In this document: positions 1 through 8,443 of the stretch, piece by piece
How the letters are laid out: every line of letters begins with the position of its first letter
Position numbering within the stretch: the first letter of the stretch is position 1
Source: Bugula neritina
Lineage: Eukaryota; Animalia; Bryozoa
NCBI GenBank assembly: GCA_964035545.1
Contig: CAXIUT010000139.1
Location: 1-8,443 of the forward strand
Direction: 5' to 3'
Length of the DNA stretch: 8,443 nt
The notes under the pieces: generated by a model
Database searches by the model: none
The model's input: the letters and a program-made list of their open reading frames with translations, nothing else
What the model was told of the DNA's origin: nothing
Made by a program: the position numbers and the translations under genes

Positions 1-70
1 CCCAACCCCAACCCCAACCCCAACCCCAACCCCAACCCCAACCCCAACCCCAACCCCAACCCCAACCCCA
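1..70 (+). repeat. Left telomere, (CCCCAA)n
   Basis: Perfect tandem C4A2 repeats from base 1; same unit as the Tetrahymena telomere. Confidence 0.98.
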
Positions 71-351
71 TAGTAAAATAATAATGAAATGTAACTTCTT
101 TTTCTATTAACAATTAATAATCATCTGATATTTAATTTCAATCATAATTATTGAATTTTGAATATTTTATTTTAGCTATGATATATTTAAATTATGCAAA
201 TAAATAATAATTGTTTTGTTGCGAATATTTAGAATGACAACTTTTTATTTTTTGACAGATTTCATTTTATATTTATATTCCATAAATATCATACAAATAA
301 GAATAAAATCATTAGATATAATAGAACAAATGTGTAATATTAATAAATTTT

Positions 352-1218
352 ATGATAATAAATACTAATGATCATGAAAAATAGCCAGAAACCATCTAAT
401 ACATCCGAGAATTAGTGAATAATCTCTATAAACCAGAAGAACGAATCCTAGATTAAGATTCACTTGTAGTCAGTTCCTCTTAATCATCAAGTTTACAAAC
501 AGAACCTATAATATCTAAACCTAAAAAAAAAAGAACCATCAAAACACCTAAAAAATAATAAAGATATGTATCTCCTTATAGGCAATCAAGTTTATCTATG
601 AGAAAAATAATGAATTCAAAAGGAAATAACAAAACTCAATTAATTCCTTTTACTAATCCAAATATACATGATTCGGTTAATAAGTCATCATTTTAGAGAA
701 GGTCTCTTAAGACAGTATCAGCTAGTAAATATAAACAGATTCCTTCTCTTTTAGAAAAATTATAGAAAAACTAACTTGATAAAATGAAAGATTAAGCTAA
801 ATTTATCTTTGATAAAAAAATCAAAGAGAAAAGAAATATGAATAATTAGTAAAAGAATAATCGATGGGCTGATTTTTTACTAAGATAGAGAAGATGGGAA
901 TAATAAAAATAGATAAAGAAAATGGATGCTCTTCAGAAATAAATAGCTAAAGATTATGCTTTTTAAACAAATTTTACAGCAAAATAATATCCTAAAATGA
1001 ATGTCTAGGAACATATTAAGATAGTAAAAAGAAAGAAAAATAGATTAGAATAAGAACTTCAAAAATATTCATTGAATTATTATTCTCATCAAAATGTATC
1101 ACCTCAAAGAAAACGATCTAAATCTCCCTTAGGCGATAAAATAAAAGTTGAAGCATAATAAAAGTTGGTAAGAGTTTCAAATGAAAAAGAAGCCAAGTTT
1201 TTAGTGGCTAATGATTGA
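352..1218 (+). CDS. Hypothetical protein, 288 aa, basic/Ser-rich with a probable coiled-coil segment (TAR=Glu)
   Basis: ATG 352 to TGA 1216-1218 with no internal TGA over 288 codons: MIINTNDHEKEPETIEYIRELVNNLYKP...RWADFLLRERRWEEEKEIKKMDALQKEIAKDY...KFLVAND*. No family recognised. Confidence 0.85.
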
Positions 1219-1267
1219 TAAATACCTTTATTTATATTATGATATAAATATAACTTTGAAAAATATA

Positions 1268-2473
1268 TCATTATACATGACTAATGATCGATGACACAAG
1301 ATTTCCTTCAAATGAGTAATGATTTTTTTTATTTTTATGATTATTTTTCAATGAATTTGATTCTATCGTTTGAGCTTGAGTTAATAATAATCTTAGAAGT
1401 TAATCTTTTTTAATTTATGATTTATTTTTCTACAATTGTTAATTTAGTCTTGAATGAATAAGTTCTTCAAAGGAATGTCTGTTGGTAGAATCGATATTTT
1501 CTTTATTAAAACTTAAAATATCACTAAAACAACTTTTATCTTTCAACTATGTATAAGGAGAAATAGATGAACATTTTATTATTCCAGCATTTTGTTTAAG
1601 ATATTTCATAAAACTTTAACTACCATCCACATATGATTAGTCAAATGAATGCTAATTTCCTTATTTTTAGGATATAGAACTAAAATGATTATTTTTGTAG
1701 TTCAAAGATTCTTTGTAAATCATATCGAGATCAAATTTTTTAACAAAAAGATCTTATTTTATTATTTTAATTGAATTTGGTAAGTCTTAATATGTTTTTT
1801 AGAAAAGAGTGCTCCAGTGAATCATCGATTTGGTTTGTTAGATAAAAGCTGTAAGAAAATGATTGAAAAATCTATTTTAGTCTTGATATTTTTTAATACT
1901 ATCAAAATATTTCATGATATCGTCTTCACATAGATCTAATCTGTGTTTTAACTCTTCAATTATATTCTAGCAATCTACTATTTTATGATTTCTTCTTTAT
2001 ATTTATGCTAAAAGTTAATAGTATTTGTTATTTAGTATGATAAATTAATTTTACTTTGATAGATATTTTTTTTATACCTGAAGATAGTTTTATTTATTCA
2101 AAGTAATTTCTTCTTAAAAACTCATTTTAATGAATTTTATCTACTTATTATGCTACATCTTTAACTATTAACATTTACAACATAGACTCACTATACTTTT
2201 CTCATTAGTCTGGAAAGGCTAAATTGTCTACTACTGATGTATGATTGGCCTTGATAGTGAAGCTTTCATCATACGCTGGTCAGTGCCAATTTTATTTTTA
2301 TTATTAAGATCTATTGACTTAACTAATGCCCTTGTTTAGGATTTTAGTCCTTTTGAATATTTGATAGGGTTGATATTTATACTGTGTTGAATTTATTTTC
2401 GAGGTTTGTGCTTTGTTGTTGATCTACGACTTTTGTATTAGTTCGATATCTATCGATAGAATTCTGATTTCAT
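1268..2473 (-). CDS. Hypothetical protein, 401 aa, with a probable central coiled coil (TAR=Glu)
   Basis: ATG at 2473 to TGA at 1270-1268 with no internal TGA over 401 codons: MKSEFYREISNEYKSRRSTTKHKP...CCKCEELKMEHNKEIKFIKMSFEEEI...ENIIEELKHRLDLCEDDIMKYF...SIISHVE*. Convergent with the previous gene, 49 bp apart. Confidence 0.88.
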
Positions 2474-2554
2474 ATGAACGTTAATTGTTATTAAAAATAA
2501 TAGAAGTAAGATTATTGAAAAATAATCAATCAATCACCTTTTTGAATCTTTCTA

Positions 2555-3221
2555 ATGCAATTATTTCTTAATAGACATTTTTCTAATTATTTTTTTTTCA
2601 ATAAAGATGATTATCTTCAAAGAAGTCTTGAGTAGCTGAACTCTATTCAATATTAATAACGATAAAAACAATAATTTGATTCTAATAGTAATATTTTTTA
2701 GTTTGATATTGAGTCTTTGATAACTTAAGGTTGAAAGTTGAATAATATCATACTTACTGAACCTACTTGAAAGTAAATACAGAGTAATAGTTCAATATTT
2801 TTCATCAATATCAGACAGAAATTACACTGTTTATTAATTTAAAACTCCTATAACAAATCAGAATAATATCTTTGAAGAAAATCATGATTAAGATAATTAT
2901 TAAAGTGAACAGTAGTAGTTCAAATTACTTCCCTTATCAACTTTTACATTTAAGCAACTACTTCTTTTCTATTTTTGGTAGTTTTTTCAGCCATTCTTTC
3001 AGGTAATCATTTAATTTCCTCAATTATAAAACGTTTTACAAGTAAAAAACAATAGTATAAAGGGTCTAATTAACTATATAATTAAAAATCTCATGACAGA
3101 TAATGAAAAAAGATGGTAGTAATAGGTTTAGTCTGCAACTTTGCTTTGTTTGGGGATTTTTTCTTTTAAACGGAAGAGCGTCAGTAGTTTATACCTTATG
3201 TTCGAATAGTTTTATAGTTGA
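2555..3221 (+). CDS. Probable hypothetical gene (or pseudogene), exon structure unresolved
   Basis: ATG 2555 opens a 59-codon acidic frame (...SLEELNSIQYEEREKQEFD...ESLITEG, TGA 2732). A different frame is open from 2742 to TGA 3219-3221 (...FEENHDEDNYESEQEEFK...). No 20-21 nt GTA..AG intron joins the two. Confidence 0.4.
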
Positions 3222-3243
3222 TATAATTAAATTATCTGAGTGA

Positions 3244-3945
3244 ATGAATTCGTCTAATGCTGAATATTCTTAATCTGGAAATATGAACAGTCCTAGAGAC
3301 TAATAAATGACCAAAAAAGTGAGCGGTTACGTTCAAGGAGAGAGAATAGGAAAATGGAGCGATGAAGAACATTTAAAATACATTGTATTTATTGACTACA
3401 ACAAATAAAAGATGAGATCTAAGTAGAAGCGAAGGTAGTTTGATAATTTATGTAGATCTAACAAGTTTTACGAACAAATGTCCAATTTTATTTCGACTCG
3501 AAACGCTTTACAATGTAGGAGCCATCACCAGAAGTTGGAAGAAAAATATACTCATACAAATAAGATTATCTCCTTATTCAAGGGTCACTTTCACAAATCA
3601 CTCTTCAAGAATTACACAGAATAGCTTGAAAAAATGATACTGGAACAAAACATAGATAACGTTCCTCAACAATAACCCAACGGAAGTCAAATGGTCAGTG
3701 TAGAAGTTCAAACTGATATTAAAGACCTCAGGTGTGAATTTGTCTTCGCTAACCCCAATTTAATAGTTATTCAAAACAAAAACAATCCCATGGAACATCA
3801 ACCTTTTAGTTTTCCACCTCCTCCAATCTACTACCCTGAACCCATACTCAACAGAAATATAGCACCTACTTCTATGGGACCTCCAGTTCCATACCCAACA
3901 GGGTCGTTCGGATGGTGGGGTGGATACTCAAATCGCAGCTTTTGA
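3244..3945 (+). CDS. Single-repeat Myb/SANT-domain protein (SHAQKY-like), 226 aa; join(3244..3434,3456..3945)
   Basis: GKWSDEEHLKYIVF...RRSNKFYEQMSNFISTRNALQCRSHHQKLEEKY matches the Myb helix-turn-helix pattern. Pro-rich C-terminus (track ORF 3691-3945). Ends TGA TGA. Confidence 0.9.
3435..3455 (+). other. Putative 21-nt spliceosomal intron
   Basis: GTAGTTTGATAATTTATGTAG. It is frame-neutral, so it is inferred from its ends, its size class and Myb helix spacing. Confidence 0.7.
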
Positions 3946-4117
3946 TGATTATAACTAAGCTTTATTATACTATTTTTTTGAATAATATAAAAGAATAAAG
4001 AATTCAAGTTAAATAATGAAGATAGAACTCAGATATTCTGGTTTTAAATTGATTAAGAGCATTATGATCTTATTATTATTTATAATTTAATTTAGGACCT
4101 TCGAAATTATAATTTCT

Positions 4118-5898
4118 ATGTCGTAGTAGTGCATAAAGGTCTTCGTTCGAGTCCGTCCTCTATCCCATAGATAGGTTCAAAAATGTACTTTCTTAGTAAT
4201 TAAGCAAATTCTGAATGTCTTACTTCAGATTAGACAGAAAAACAACTGATCTTAAGAGATCAACATCGACATCGTTGCAACTAAAAAGTATTTACCTTCG
4301 ATGACATCTTCATCAGTAATAGCTAACAATCTACTATCTTCGATAGGACATGCAAATCACTCACAAAATAAGTTCTTCAAGGATATAATGGAACTGTCTT
4401 TGCTTACGGTCAAACTGGTTCAGGCAAAAGTTACACAATGATGGGAGATTATCAAGGATAATAGTAAAGCGGTCTTATTCCTCGTTGTTTTGATTCGATT
4501 CTTTAAGCAGCTAAAACAGATAATTCCAAAGACTATCTTATCATGTGTTCTTATATTGAACTATACAATGAATAGCTCAGGGATTTACTTCAAACATGTG
4601 AAAAAGGAAAATTATAGCTAAGATAGTCTCCAGAAAAGGGTGTATTTATAAAGGATTTGAAAAAATGGCCAGTAACATCGCAAAAATAAATGATGAAGTA
4701 TATGAAAATAGGTAATCAGAATAGAGCTACTGCCTAAACTCAAATGAATAATTAATCGTCACGCTCTCATTCTATTTTTACTATCTATGTCTAATCTTTA
4801 TAGAAAAGATAAGGAAAAATGTAAAAGTTAATTGGTTCTAAATTTAACCTCATAGATTTAGCTGGTTCAGAAAGACAAAGTAAAACATCTGCAGTCGGAT
4901 AACGATTCATAGAAGCAACTAAAATCAACTTATCTCTAACTGCTCTTGGCAAAGTTATCTCATCTTTGGTGTAAGGTAAAGGAGGACATATTCCATATAG
5001 AGATTCTAAATTGACAAGATTATTACAAGATTCTTTGGGTGGTAATTCCAAAACAGTTATGATTGCGAATGTATCTCCTTGGAGCTACAACTATGAAGAA
5101 ACTTTATCTACTTTGAAATATGCTTCAAGAGCTAAATACATCACAAACATTCCTCATATCAATTTGGATCCAAAAGATGCTTTATTGAAAGAATACTAGT
5201 TATAAATAGTGAAGTTAAGAGGATTATTGACTGATATTCAGAAAGATGATCAACCTGTTCTTGATTAATTGATAGAATAAAACAGAAGAATTACAAAATA
5301 GGCATAATCTGATAAAAGAAATTTGATAAATAAGATAAAAAAACTATAGTAGCAATTTATTTCAGCTCCTTATTAGTTATCAAAGTAATACAAGAAATAA
5401 AGAAACATTAGAGAACAAAAATTAAGTTTTATGTCTAAAAACTACTCTAATTTATAAGAATAAGTAAAAGATATGAGAGAACAGTTGATCGAATTGAGAA
5501 GAAAGTATAAAAACGCATCGAAATAGATCTTTCAAATGTAAAACTAACATGAAAAAGAAAGATAAATAGTTCAATAGTAATTCGATTAAATAAAAAAAGA
5601 AAACATAATGTTAAAAAGTGTTCTAAATGTATTATTTACATAAAAACAACTTAAAAATATCGTAACTCTTGGAAATTGGTAGAGCTCATCTCGTTTTAAA
5701 CTACCTAAGTTTTATTTTAAAGACAGACACACCTTAGCATTTCCTTCATAGTAGGATCAAAATGATGAACCATTCAAGAGCAAGGGTGATAGCCGTGAAT
5801 GTTCAATGGATAAGTATCAGAAGACGGCAACTTCTTTTGGAGCAAAGTTAAGTGCAAACAATATAAATCGAGGAGGAGTGGTATTTCGTCGTAAATGA
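4118..5898 (+). CDS. Kinesin motor protein, kinesin-2 (KIF3/KIF17/OSM-3) type, 586 aa; join(4118..4184,4205..5898)
   Basis: Motifs: [32 protein letters not shown] (P-loop), SSRSH (switch I), [11 protein letters not shown] (switch II), [45 protein letters not shown], the kinesin-2-type neck [12 protein letters not shown], then a coiled-coil stalk. TGA 5896-5898. Confidence 0.95.
4185..4204 (+). other. 20-nt intron
   Basis: GTACTTTCTTAGTAATTAAG; needed to join the RVRP exon to the motor frame. Confidence 0.85.
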
Positions 5899-5992
5899 TA
5901 ATTTTAAAATAAGTATGATATAAGTTGAATTATTATAAGATCAGAAATAGTGAATGTAACAAAACTTACCTCAAATAAAGGTGATAGTAGTA

Positions 5993-6037
5993 GGGGTTGG
6001 GGTTGGGGTTGGGGTTGGGGTTGGGGTTGGGGTTGGG
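5993..6037 (+). repeat. Internal telomeric tract (GGGGTT)7GGG, right telomere of the first molecule
   Basis: 45 bp of perfect G4T2 repeats 94 bp after the kinesin stop, in right-end orientation. Confidence 0.97.
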
Positions 6038-6671
6038 AACGATTAATTTAACTAATTCAGCTAAGCTACTCTAGGAGCAGCTTTCGTATCTAAAGTACAT
6101 ACCTATTCTGGTGATAAATCTATCAGATTTCAAGTATTAAATGATTAATAATAGATCTGGGATACTGCAGGTCAATAAAAATACAAATCAATTGCACCTA
6201 TATACTATCGAGGTATTTACTAATCAATTTAGATTCTCAAATAGCTTTATGTGTCTATGATATCACTAAGAAGTAATCATTTGCTGTATTGAAAAGTTGG
6301 GTCGATTAACTCAAATCAAAAGGACCATAAAATATATGTACTTTTATTATTAGTTAGTACTTGTCGTTGTTGGTAATAAAATAGATAAAGCTTAAGAAGA
6401 AATGATAGGGTATAACTAAGCTAAAGATTATGCTTAATCAGTCGGAGCCATGCTCAAGTTAACGAGTGCTAAAGATGGAAAAGGAATAAATGTAATCTTT
6501 TAATTATTTTAGTAACTTTTTACGGCAGTAGCATAAAAATTATAAGAAAGAAAGCAAGCCCAAATAGTAAATAGTGGAGGTCGTAAAGTACCTCTTGGCG
6601 GTTCAGGAAAGTCATAGAAGACAAAATGTTGCGGGGGATAATAAAAGAAATAAAAGAGATAAAAGAAATGA
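6038..6671 (+). CDS. Rab GTPase, Rab5/Rab22-like, 5'-truncated (183 aa present); join(<6038..6133,6155..6212,6233..6337,6358..6491,6513..6671)
   Basis: Motifs: ATLGAAF (switch I), [21 protein letters not shown] (G3/switch II), YDIT, WVDELKSKGPENI, VGNKID (G4), TSAK (G5), and a CC near the end. Start codon and G1 P-loop are absent; the frame begins immediately after the telomeric tract. Confidence 0.93.
6134..6154 (+). other. 21-nt intron
   Basis: GTATTAAATGATTAATAATAG; removal restores FQ|IWDTAGQ. Confidence 0.9.
6213..6232 (+). other. 20-nt intron
   Basis: GTATTTACTAATCAATTTAG; frame-restoring. Confidence 0.92.
6338..6357 (+). other. 20-nt intron
   Basis: GTACTTTTATTATTAGTTAG; frame-restoring. 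Confidence 0.92.
6492..6512 (+). other. 21-nt intron
   Basis: GTAATCTTTTAATTATTTTAG; removal restores the Rab GIN|ELF motif. Confidence 0.85.
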
Positions 6672-6770
6672 ATGTGTATGGTTATTTTTAATACATTTAA
6701 TAGCTAAATAAAGATCTTAGACTATGTTTCTTTTATTTAATACCAGATGATAATATAATTATATTAATAG

Positions 6771-8316
6771 ATGAGTGAATATTTTAGACGATACATAAAG
6801 CGAGAACACTACCCCAATGCCCCGTACTTTAATAATCACAAAGCACAAATATCAAATTCAAAACTTCCTTCAAAAATTGTGTATACGACTCCTTCATTTC
6901 CAGAGAATGGAAACAAACTTGGGACGATGACTGGAATGTCATCTGGTGCTAAAAGTAACAAGTCGACTGGGTTTTTTAAAGACACAGAATACTGCCACAT
7001 ATGAAAGTCAACCACTTCAGAGGATGGCACTAACTATGTAGAAAAGATATGTTAAATAAAAATCTAAAAAAGTATAAACGAGGACTAGACAAACAAAATA
7101 ACAAATAATAATCAGATTAGTATGACTTTTTGCCATCGACCTATCTCCTTCCCAGCGAATACGTCATCTTCTATTAATAATTCAAAAGAACTCAACACGA
7201 TTCCAAATCTCTATGGATTATGAAACCTGTACTCTAAGCCTTATCTAGACTTCAAAATGCCAAGGAAAAGGCATATTCATCTTCAACAAAATAAGCTAGG
7301 TTTCAAGATGGAAATCATTCAATCGAGACAACCCACCAGAACCATACGTAGCCCAACGATATCTCCTAAACCCTCTTTTATTTGGAGGAAGAAAATTCGA
7401 TATGAGAATCTACGCTTTATGCGTATCATATCAACCTTTAACAATCTATCTCTATCGAGCAGGATTCGCCAGATTTACCCATTAACGATACGACAACTCA
7501 GACTACTAAAATCTATGTAAATATCAATAAATAAAGATAAACATCTAACCAATGTGGCAATCAACATAAATTCTCCTAATTATGTGAAATGGATCGGTGG
7601 GAAATGGTTTCTCTAAGAGTTGAAGAAATTTATGTTGAGCAAGGTAGGTGTATAGAAGACAAATAGTGCATTTTATGATATTCAGAGATGCATAATAAAA
7701 TCAATGCTAGCTGTACAAAAACTAGTAACTAATAGTCCTGTTTCATTCTAATTATATGGTTTTGATTTCATATTCGATAATAATGGAAAAGCATGGCTCC
7801 TAGAAGTCAACGGAGGTCCATCGATGACATCCAACACTAAATAAGATTCATAACTCAAAACTGGATTAATCGATGATGTCATGACCATCATCAATATCTA
7901 AGGAATGTATTTGATTTGTTATTTAGTCTCAAAGGAGATGAAGAAGTGGTTGGAGGATTTGATCAGATTTATAAAGGGAAATAAATTGGTATAGGATCAT
8001 CGACAAGCTATACCACTATGCTTGGATGCAAAAATAATAGAATTGATAATTTGAAAAAGTTGGCAAGAGCCACTGCTTTCAGATTGGCAAAGTAATATCA
8101 AGAAAAGAACAGAGTGATCGATTCTAACAAAAAGATAGAAAATAGATTTACTATAAAAACAAATCCTAAAATAGAGAAGAAAGGACCTCAAAAAGCAATC
8201 ACTATCGAATCCAAGAAAAGTAATTATGACATAAAGTAGATGTTGGTTCAGTAAATGTAAAGAACAATGTGGTAAAAGTCAGTCAAAATACTAAGAGGAA
8301 ATAAGAGTAAGAATGA
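6771..8316 (+). CDS. TTLL9: Tubulin polyglutamylase, TTLL9-like, 481 aa; join(6771..6823,6844..7228,7249..7516,7537..7906,7927..8219,8240..8316)
   Basis: TTL-domain motifs: [92 protein letters not shown], and [21 protein letters not shown]...VGGFD (the last segment resembles TTLL9 from memory). Upstream in-frame ATGs at 6672, 6678 and 6747 make the start slightly uncertain. Confidence 0.9.
6824..6843 (+). other. 20-nt intron
   Basis: GTACTTTAATAATCACAAAG; joins the ATG exon to the conserved frame. Confidence 0.8.
7229..7248 (+). other. 20-nt intron
   Basis: GTACTCTAAGCCTTATCTAG; restores WIMKP|[10 protein letters not shown]. Confidence 0.92.
7517..7536 (+). other. 20-nt intron
   Basis: GTAAATATCAATAAATAAAG; restores the frame before HLTN. 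Confidence 0.92.
7907..7926 (+). other. 20-nt intron
   Basis: GTATTTGATTTGTTATTTAG; frame-restoring. Confidence 0.92.
8220..8239 (+). other. 20-nt intron
   Basis: GTAATTATGACATAAAGTAG. Without it the frame runs into the telomere with no TGA; with it the frame stops at 8314-8316. Confidence 0.85.
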
Positions 8317-8368
8317 TAGATATTTATTTTTCGAATAGGTTATTCATCATATTTTATCAACAAATAAT

Positions 8369-8443
8369 GGGGTTGGGGTTGGGGTTGGGGTTGGGGTTGG
8401 GGTTGGGGTTGGGGTTGGGGTTGGGGTTGGGGTTGGGTTGGGG
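8369..8443 (+). repeat. Right telomere, (GGGGTT)n
   Basis: G4T2 repeats to the end of the window, with one 3-G unit near the tip. Confidence 0.98.

Follow-up and report, generated by a model that had tools for sequence, protein, structure and literature searches.

The question raised by this locus is where its chromosome ends. Contig CAXIUT010000139.1 of the Bugula neritina assembly GCA_964035545.1, which we analysed at its full length of 8,443 nucleotides and refer to as the window, carries telomeric repeats at both ends and a third telomeric tract between them, and this third tract lies inside a gene for a Rab GTPase. An earlier note on this DNA had taken positions 1-6037, which close with the internal tract, for a complete telomere-to-telomere chromosome of a ciliate. 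We conclude instead, with a probability of about 0.8, that the window represents one 8.4-kb chromosome in which the Rab gene is intact in most copies, and that the internal tract is the assembly trace of a minor alternative chromosome end. The features on which the argument turns are the following.

1-70, strand not given: left terminal telomere, (C4A2)n, found by repeat match
5993-6037, strand not given: internal tract, (G4T2)7.5, found by repeat match, inside the Rab gene
8369-8443, strand not given: right terminal telomere, (G4T2)n, 52 nt past the stop of a tubulin tyrosine ligase-like (TTLL) gene
5954-6671, forward strand: Rab5-group GTPase gene, 211 codons, stop TGA at 6669-6671, introns at 6134-6154, 6213-6232, 6338-6357 and 6492-6512

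All three tracts are present as the earlier note had claimed: a 12-mer of the telomere repeat matched 28 times in the window and not once in 200 shuffles. The window is the whole contig, with (C4A2)n at its 5' end and (G4T2)n at its 3' end. The internal tract has the orientation expected of a right-hand end; it begins 95 nt beyond the stop codon of an upstream kinesin gene and about 40 nt into the Rab coding sequence.

We examined what the tract does to the Rab gene. From the ATG at 5954, the frame reads MEQNLPQIKVIVVG, then (VG)7, then NDEFNEFSEATLGAAF, so that a single open frame runs through the telomeric repeat, and NDEFNEFSEATLGAAFVSK, which emerges 3' of the tract, is the switch I region of a Rab. 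For comparison we used loci from related ciliates (L001-L006, L007, L008 and L009-L011), which came from metagenomes of lakes and other sources and from a single Logan run, and were found through the kinesin fragment 4975-5196 (stop-broken relatives at about 89% identity). All five distinct Rab orthologs among them (L001, L007, L008, L009 and L011) begin MxQxLPQIKVIVVG-DSGVGKSSIL[YF]RFV-NDEFNEFSEATLGAAF. Bases 5996-6037 of the window thus stand in the place of exactly 14 ortholog codons, those for DSGVGKSSIL[YF]RFV, which encode the P-loop and helix 1, and there is no insertion or deletion. Similarly, blastn aligned window positions 4370-6541 to the relative loci as a single segment spanning the tract. 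As the window stands, the P-loop signature GxxxxGK[ST] is replaced by (VG)7, whereas GDSGVGKS is found in all five orthologs; we read the missing P-loop as a defect of the assembly and not of the gene. The remainder of the protein has the marks of the Rab5 group, namely switch I and II motifs (TLGAAF, WDTAGQE) and a C-terminal double cysteine in ...KCCGG. Against structures in the PDB, the first exon of an ortholog aligned without gaps to Rab5A/B/C, RABF2b and Ypt51, with Rab11 about equally good; this comparison used a stop-free ortholog exon, the window's own Rab pieces being too short to score.

Independent short-read contigs provide a second line of evidence. Ten runs from three studies carry part of the window, and four of these carry at least half of the sampled words. 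The contigs considered here were placed on 2500-8443 only, a range outside which the left telomere lies; those that bridge the site were built from 31-letter words, and window positions 5980-6045 (66 letters) were masked as repeat in the comparison. In run X1, record 7 (3315 nt) was placed on 5074-5979 and 6046-8361, with 66 letters opposite the 66 masked ones. In run X2, record 10 (1641 nt) was placed on 5337-5979 and 6046-6977, again with 66 letters opposite 66, and record 19 of run X3 continues 161 letters past 5979. The behaviour of the same runs at the right end of the window is different: contigs from X1, X2 and X3 stop 27, 33 and 29 letters past 8361, respectively, and unique 31-mers reach no more than 35 letters past that position. 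The fifteen 31-mers of the internal tract collapse to 6 words, which are common to both chromosome ends. Contigs built from 31-letter words stop at the true end and cannot traverse 45 nt of pure repeat; therefore, the bridging contigs must hold some other sequence of equal length at the internal site. In X1, a contig lying wholly to the left of the site has a depth of 48.9 and the bridging contig one of 50.1, so that there is no excess on the left, depth being a crude measure of copy number. Exact-protein look-ups and exact scans for the left and right flanks in JGI metagenomes, aimed at this organism's own contigs, gave no match.

These results move the chromosome end from 6037 to 8443. Repeats cap both ends of the contig and contigs from three runs stop at its right end; the telomere-to-telomere unit is the whole contig 1-8443, a six-gene macronuclear chromosome of about 8.4 kb that encloses the 6-kb unit. 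Positions 1-6037 do not make up a complete chromosome: the tract lies within the Rab coding sequence, the two flanks are colinear halves of one gene, and independent contigs read on across the site. The earlier note had itself named continuation past 5993 without telomere addition as an observation that would speak against it, and such continuation is seen in contigs from at least two other studies. Its broader claim holds in kind: the ciliate, which has C4A2 telomeres and reads UAR as Glu, does carry a very small multigene chromosome with a telomere at each end, but one of 8.4 kb and six genes in place of 6 kb. At the extreme right, 8427-8443, the terminal tract closes with ...GGGGTTGGGTTGGGG, one repeat short of a G, which resembles a read error or a variant end repeat.

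How could a telomeric tract come to be written over 14 codons of a gene? We propose that most copies of the chromosome have the full 8.4 kb and an intact Rab gene, and that at least one sequenced molecule would have terminated within the Rab coding sequence, about 40 nt from its start, capped by a de novo telomere. The position would then be an alternative telomere addition site, produced by programmed alternative fragmentation or by the healing of a break, and the 6-kb isoform ending there would be rare. The assembler may have retained the telomeric tail of that molecule and gone back to full-length molecules at the corresponding coordinate, in which case 42-45 nt of G4T2 would replace the P-loop and helix 1 codons base for base. 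With such an end, about 95 nt would follow the kinesin gene, against 52 nt after TTLL at the right end; this is consistent with an alternative end that can be used, and also with the healing of a sporadic break.

Several points weigh against this proposal. The letters of the bridging contigs that lie opposite the tract were masked, and the presence of a native P-loop there rests on the argument from 31-letter words together with two words that were sampled. Two coded organism labels are attached to the bridging runs, which perhaps do not come from the assembled strain. Read-through of the site is seen in contigs, whereas the telomere-bearing minority is something we infer only from the assembled tract, and a telomere-ended read at 5993 was not directly seen.

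Among other explanations, the one that survives best is that 1-6037 is, after all, a regular 6-kb chromosome, or an abundant programmed isoform beside the 8.4-kb form, as in the nanochromosomes of Oxytricha. The orientation of the tract is right for a right-hand end, its distance from the kinesin stop (95 nt) is comparable to the 52 nt that separate the TTLL stop from the right telomere, and alternative fragmentation is known in Oxytricha (PMC3558436). However, a regular break at this position would cut the Rab gene after codon 14, the X1, X2 and X3 contigs are unbroken at the site with no raised depth to its left in X1, and the orthologous block is continuous in five relatives. We therefore regard a regular or abundant 6-kb form as unlikely. 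It is less likely still, and in our view improbable, that the macronuclear DNA truly contains an interstitial telomeric sequence here, as would result if a break had been healed and its ends subsequently rejoined, leaving a dead Rab allele. The tract is indeed present in the assembled contig, and the frame is open throughout, but the rejoining would have had to delete exactly the length of the telomere, given the absence of any insertion or deletion relative to five orthologs, and contigs built from 31-letter words cross the site, which would be impossible through 45 nt of pure repeat. A 60-base query spanning the junction between the tract and its right flank matched no listed run, although about 0.85 of the words of 5300-6800 are present in X1 and X2; this negative result lends weak support because only 2 words were sampled there. 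Finally, a chimera in which a 6-kb chromosome was ligated or mis-joined to a 2.4-kb fragment of an unrelated molecule might explain why the sequence 3' of the tract begins mid-gene, but it is scarcely credible when the two flanks are correctly spaced, in-frame parts of a single Rab gene, relatives keep the order of kinesin, Rab and TTLL, and independent contigs bridge the site.

The order Myb, kinesin-2, Rab, TTLL is kept in four relatives and kinesin-2 followed by Rab in a fifth; one relative (L009) also has a counterpart of Gene 2, described below, in the block. In these organisms the orthologous block sits on contigs of 10-47 kb that extend past both ends of the window, with 2.9-5.7 kb beyond the TTLL stop. 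We found no C4A2 or G4T2 repeats in the parts of the relatives' contigs that were read, although short-read metagenome contigs can hide minority ends. Two of the loci (L001 and L005) open with runs of N at 1-40, and the flanks of the block are there scaffolded and not contiguous. The contrast between contigs of 10-47 kb in relatives and a chromosome of 8.4 kb here is compatible with lineage-specific fragmentation.

Gene models were built with TGA as the only stop codon and gave six genes in the window, the Rab gene listed above and these five.

352-1218, forward strand: Gene 1, function unassigned, 288 codons, TGA stop, many in-frame TAA and TAG codons, recognized as a long open frame
1268-2475, reverse strand: Gene 2, conserved protein of unassigned function, 401 codons, recognized by its frame and by tblastn
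3244-3945, forward strand: Myb/SANT-like gene, 233 codons, TGA stop, named from motif inspection only
4118-5898, forward strand: kinesin-2 (KIF3/17-like) gene, 586 codons, one 20-nt intron at 4185-4204, TGA at 5896-5898, recognized by Pfam PF00225
6771-8316, forward strand: TTLL gene, 481 codons, TGA at 8314-8316, introns of 20 nt each at 6824-6843, 7229-7248, 7517-7536, 7907-7926 and 8220-8239

Four of the six genes lie complete to the left of the internal tract, in agreement with the tight packing of genes between the tracts at 1-70 and 5993 that the earlier note had described. Gene 1 occupies a TGA-free frame at 256-1215, far beyond the length expected by chance in such AT-rich DNA; its longest piece had no Pfam match, and no homolog was found among the fetched relative loci. 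Gene 2 matched L009 327-1448 by tblastn with 39% identity over 376 amino acids (E = 1e-68). The Myb/SANT-like gene has orthologs of 45-51% identity upstream of kinesin in L001, L007, L009 and L011, and its pieces had no match in Pfam. PF00225 was matched on kinesin pieces 4372-4458 and 4975-5196, and the JGI label of the relatives' proteins is kinesin family protein 3/17. PF03133 was matched on TTLL pieces 7300-7482 and 7752-7841, and TTLL orthologs are 60-73% identical. At 4968-5103, X1 contigs break into several short alternative pieces whose differences cluster at 5013-5025, which points to allelic or paralogous copies of the kinesin motor region. The roughly 700 nt at 2540-3240, between Gene 2 and the Myb-like gene, contain no convincing reading frame; in L009, about 6 kb correspond to this stretch, with other genes in it, among them a second Rab-like open reading frame.

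All ten introns in these models (one in kinesin, four in Rab and five in TTLL) are 20-21 nt long, start with GTA and end with TAG or AAG. A TTLL frame that runs without a stop into the telomere was considered and ruled out: removal of the 20-nt intron at 8220-8239 (GTA...TAG) brings the TGA at 8314-8316 into frame, which bears out the earlier statement that a telomere lies 52 bp past TTLL, and the resulting tail ends KRKEEEE, resembling HRPEEE in relatives. A candidate 23-nt intron at 7644-7666 in the same gene was dropped, as its removal breaks the frame and the region reads through uncut. The first Rab intron (6134-6154) has 21 nt and is in frame; if kept, it mimics a 7-codon insert in the beta-3 strand of the Rab. 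Spacers between the genes around the site are short: counted from stop codon to ATG, 55 nt separate kinesin and Rab (5899-5953) and 99 nt separate Rab and TTLL (6672-6770), and the telomere follows the TTLL stop after 52 nt. Within only 55 or 99 nt, a gene's 3' end must either share sequence with the promoter of its downstream neighbour or both must be minimal. The spacer between Rab and TTLL is 1.3-3.3 kb long in relatives and contains extra open reading frames there, compared with 99 nt in the window.

The genetic code of the organism can be read from the same alignments, and the assignment of UAR to Glu in the earlier note is upheld. At positions where the partner has a standard sense codon, TAA in the window stands opposite GAA or GAG of the orthologs at 34 of 59, and for TAG the count is 12 of 24. 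In the window, the final residue of the conserved switch II motif DTAGQE is encoded by TAA (DTAGQ-TAA, with TAA at 6176-6178), and the four well-modelled genes (Myb-like, kinesin, Rab and TTLL) all close with TGA. Both features of NCBI table 30, UAA and UAG as Glu and UGA as the sole stop, are thus found. UAA and UAG as Glu with UGA as stop is the peritrich nuclear code (PMC10553269; PMC4967479); the window shares with it the alignment of TAA and TAG with GAA and GAG as well as the TGA stops, and no difference was seen. The organism is a ciliate with C4A2 telomeres and the peritrich code. Its code, the C4A2 repeat and the introns of about 20 nt point towards membership of the Peritrichia, the window itself being without ribosomal RNA.

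The C terminus of the Rab protein (6627-6671) reads ...KCCGG followed by ten Glu and Lys codons (EEKKEKREKK) before the TGA, whereas relatives end in CCGGKEK or CCGSK. A double cysteine that distant from the C-terminal end is unusual in a prenylated Rab. The possibility that TAA serves as a context-dependent stop directly after ...KCCGG was ruled out, as relatives end CCGGKEK, CCGGK(TAA)K or CCGSK and then TGA, and the TAA that lies two codons ahead of the Rab stop in relatives corresponds to GAA.

For users of this assembly, its internal telomere tracts should be taken neither as chromosome boundaries nor as gene truncations. Gene predictions across them will be wrong, here by 14 codons of an essential motif, and chromosome counts based on tracts will be inflated. 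The internal tracts probably do mark real minor chromosome ends, and they may serve as a map of telomere addition sites. In size, a six-gene chromosome of 8.4 kb also falls far below those of Tetrahymena or Paramecium; should it prove typical of this genome, the organism would offer a young and tractable case for studying how extreme somatic fragmentation evolves.

The case probably belongs to a known phenomenon, alternative telomere addition on small somatic chromosomes of ciliates. Blepharisma stoltei has internal sites at which a minority of molecules acquire telomeres (alternative telomere addition sites, ATAS), most of them seen in single reads (PMC9942806). As is proposed for this locus, telomere repeats occur there at internal positions in a minority of molecules and give rise to nested, capped isoforms. 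The Blepharisma repeat is CCCTAACA and its molecules average about 130 kb, whereas here the repeat is C4A2 and the whole chromosome has 8.4 kb; moreover, the site described here is known as a tract fixed in an assembly and not from read counts. The nanochromosomes of Oxytricha trifallax (PMC3558436) are likewise kb-sized two-telomere chromosomes with nested isoforms that share genes. Oxytricha is a spirotrich with C4A4 telomeres, UAR read as Gln and mostly single-gene chromosomes; our chromosome has six genes, UAR is read as Glu, and the alternative end would fall within coding sequence.

Neotelomeres that arise inside genes by telomere healing have been found in Paramecium by Subtle-seq (PMC13076228). 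Both organisms would be oligohymenophoreans, and in both de novo telomeres would arise within genes of polyploid somatic chromosomes, where selection hardly acts against genic sites; Paramecium chromosomes, by contrast, have hundreds of kb, and their neotelomeres accumulate with clonal age (PMC13076228). The minichromosomal macronuclear genome of Paramecium bursaria (PMC7702705, as cited in PMC9942806) belongs to another oligohymenophorean in which somatic fragmentation exceeds that of its model relatives, although the present case is a single 8.4-kb molecule and not a size distribution. In the peritrich genome literature that we searched, telomeres and chromosome lengths are not treated. It is possible, though we hold it tentatively and consider it more doubtful than not, that this lineage has undergone a recent and independent, near-nanochromosomal fragmentation within the Oligohymenophorea, with multigene somatic chromosomes of a few kb and frequent alternative telomere sites, some of them intragenic, while relatives keep the same block of genes on molecules of tens of kb.

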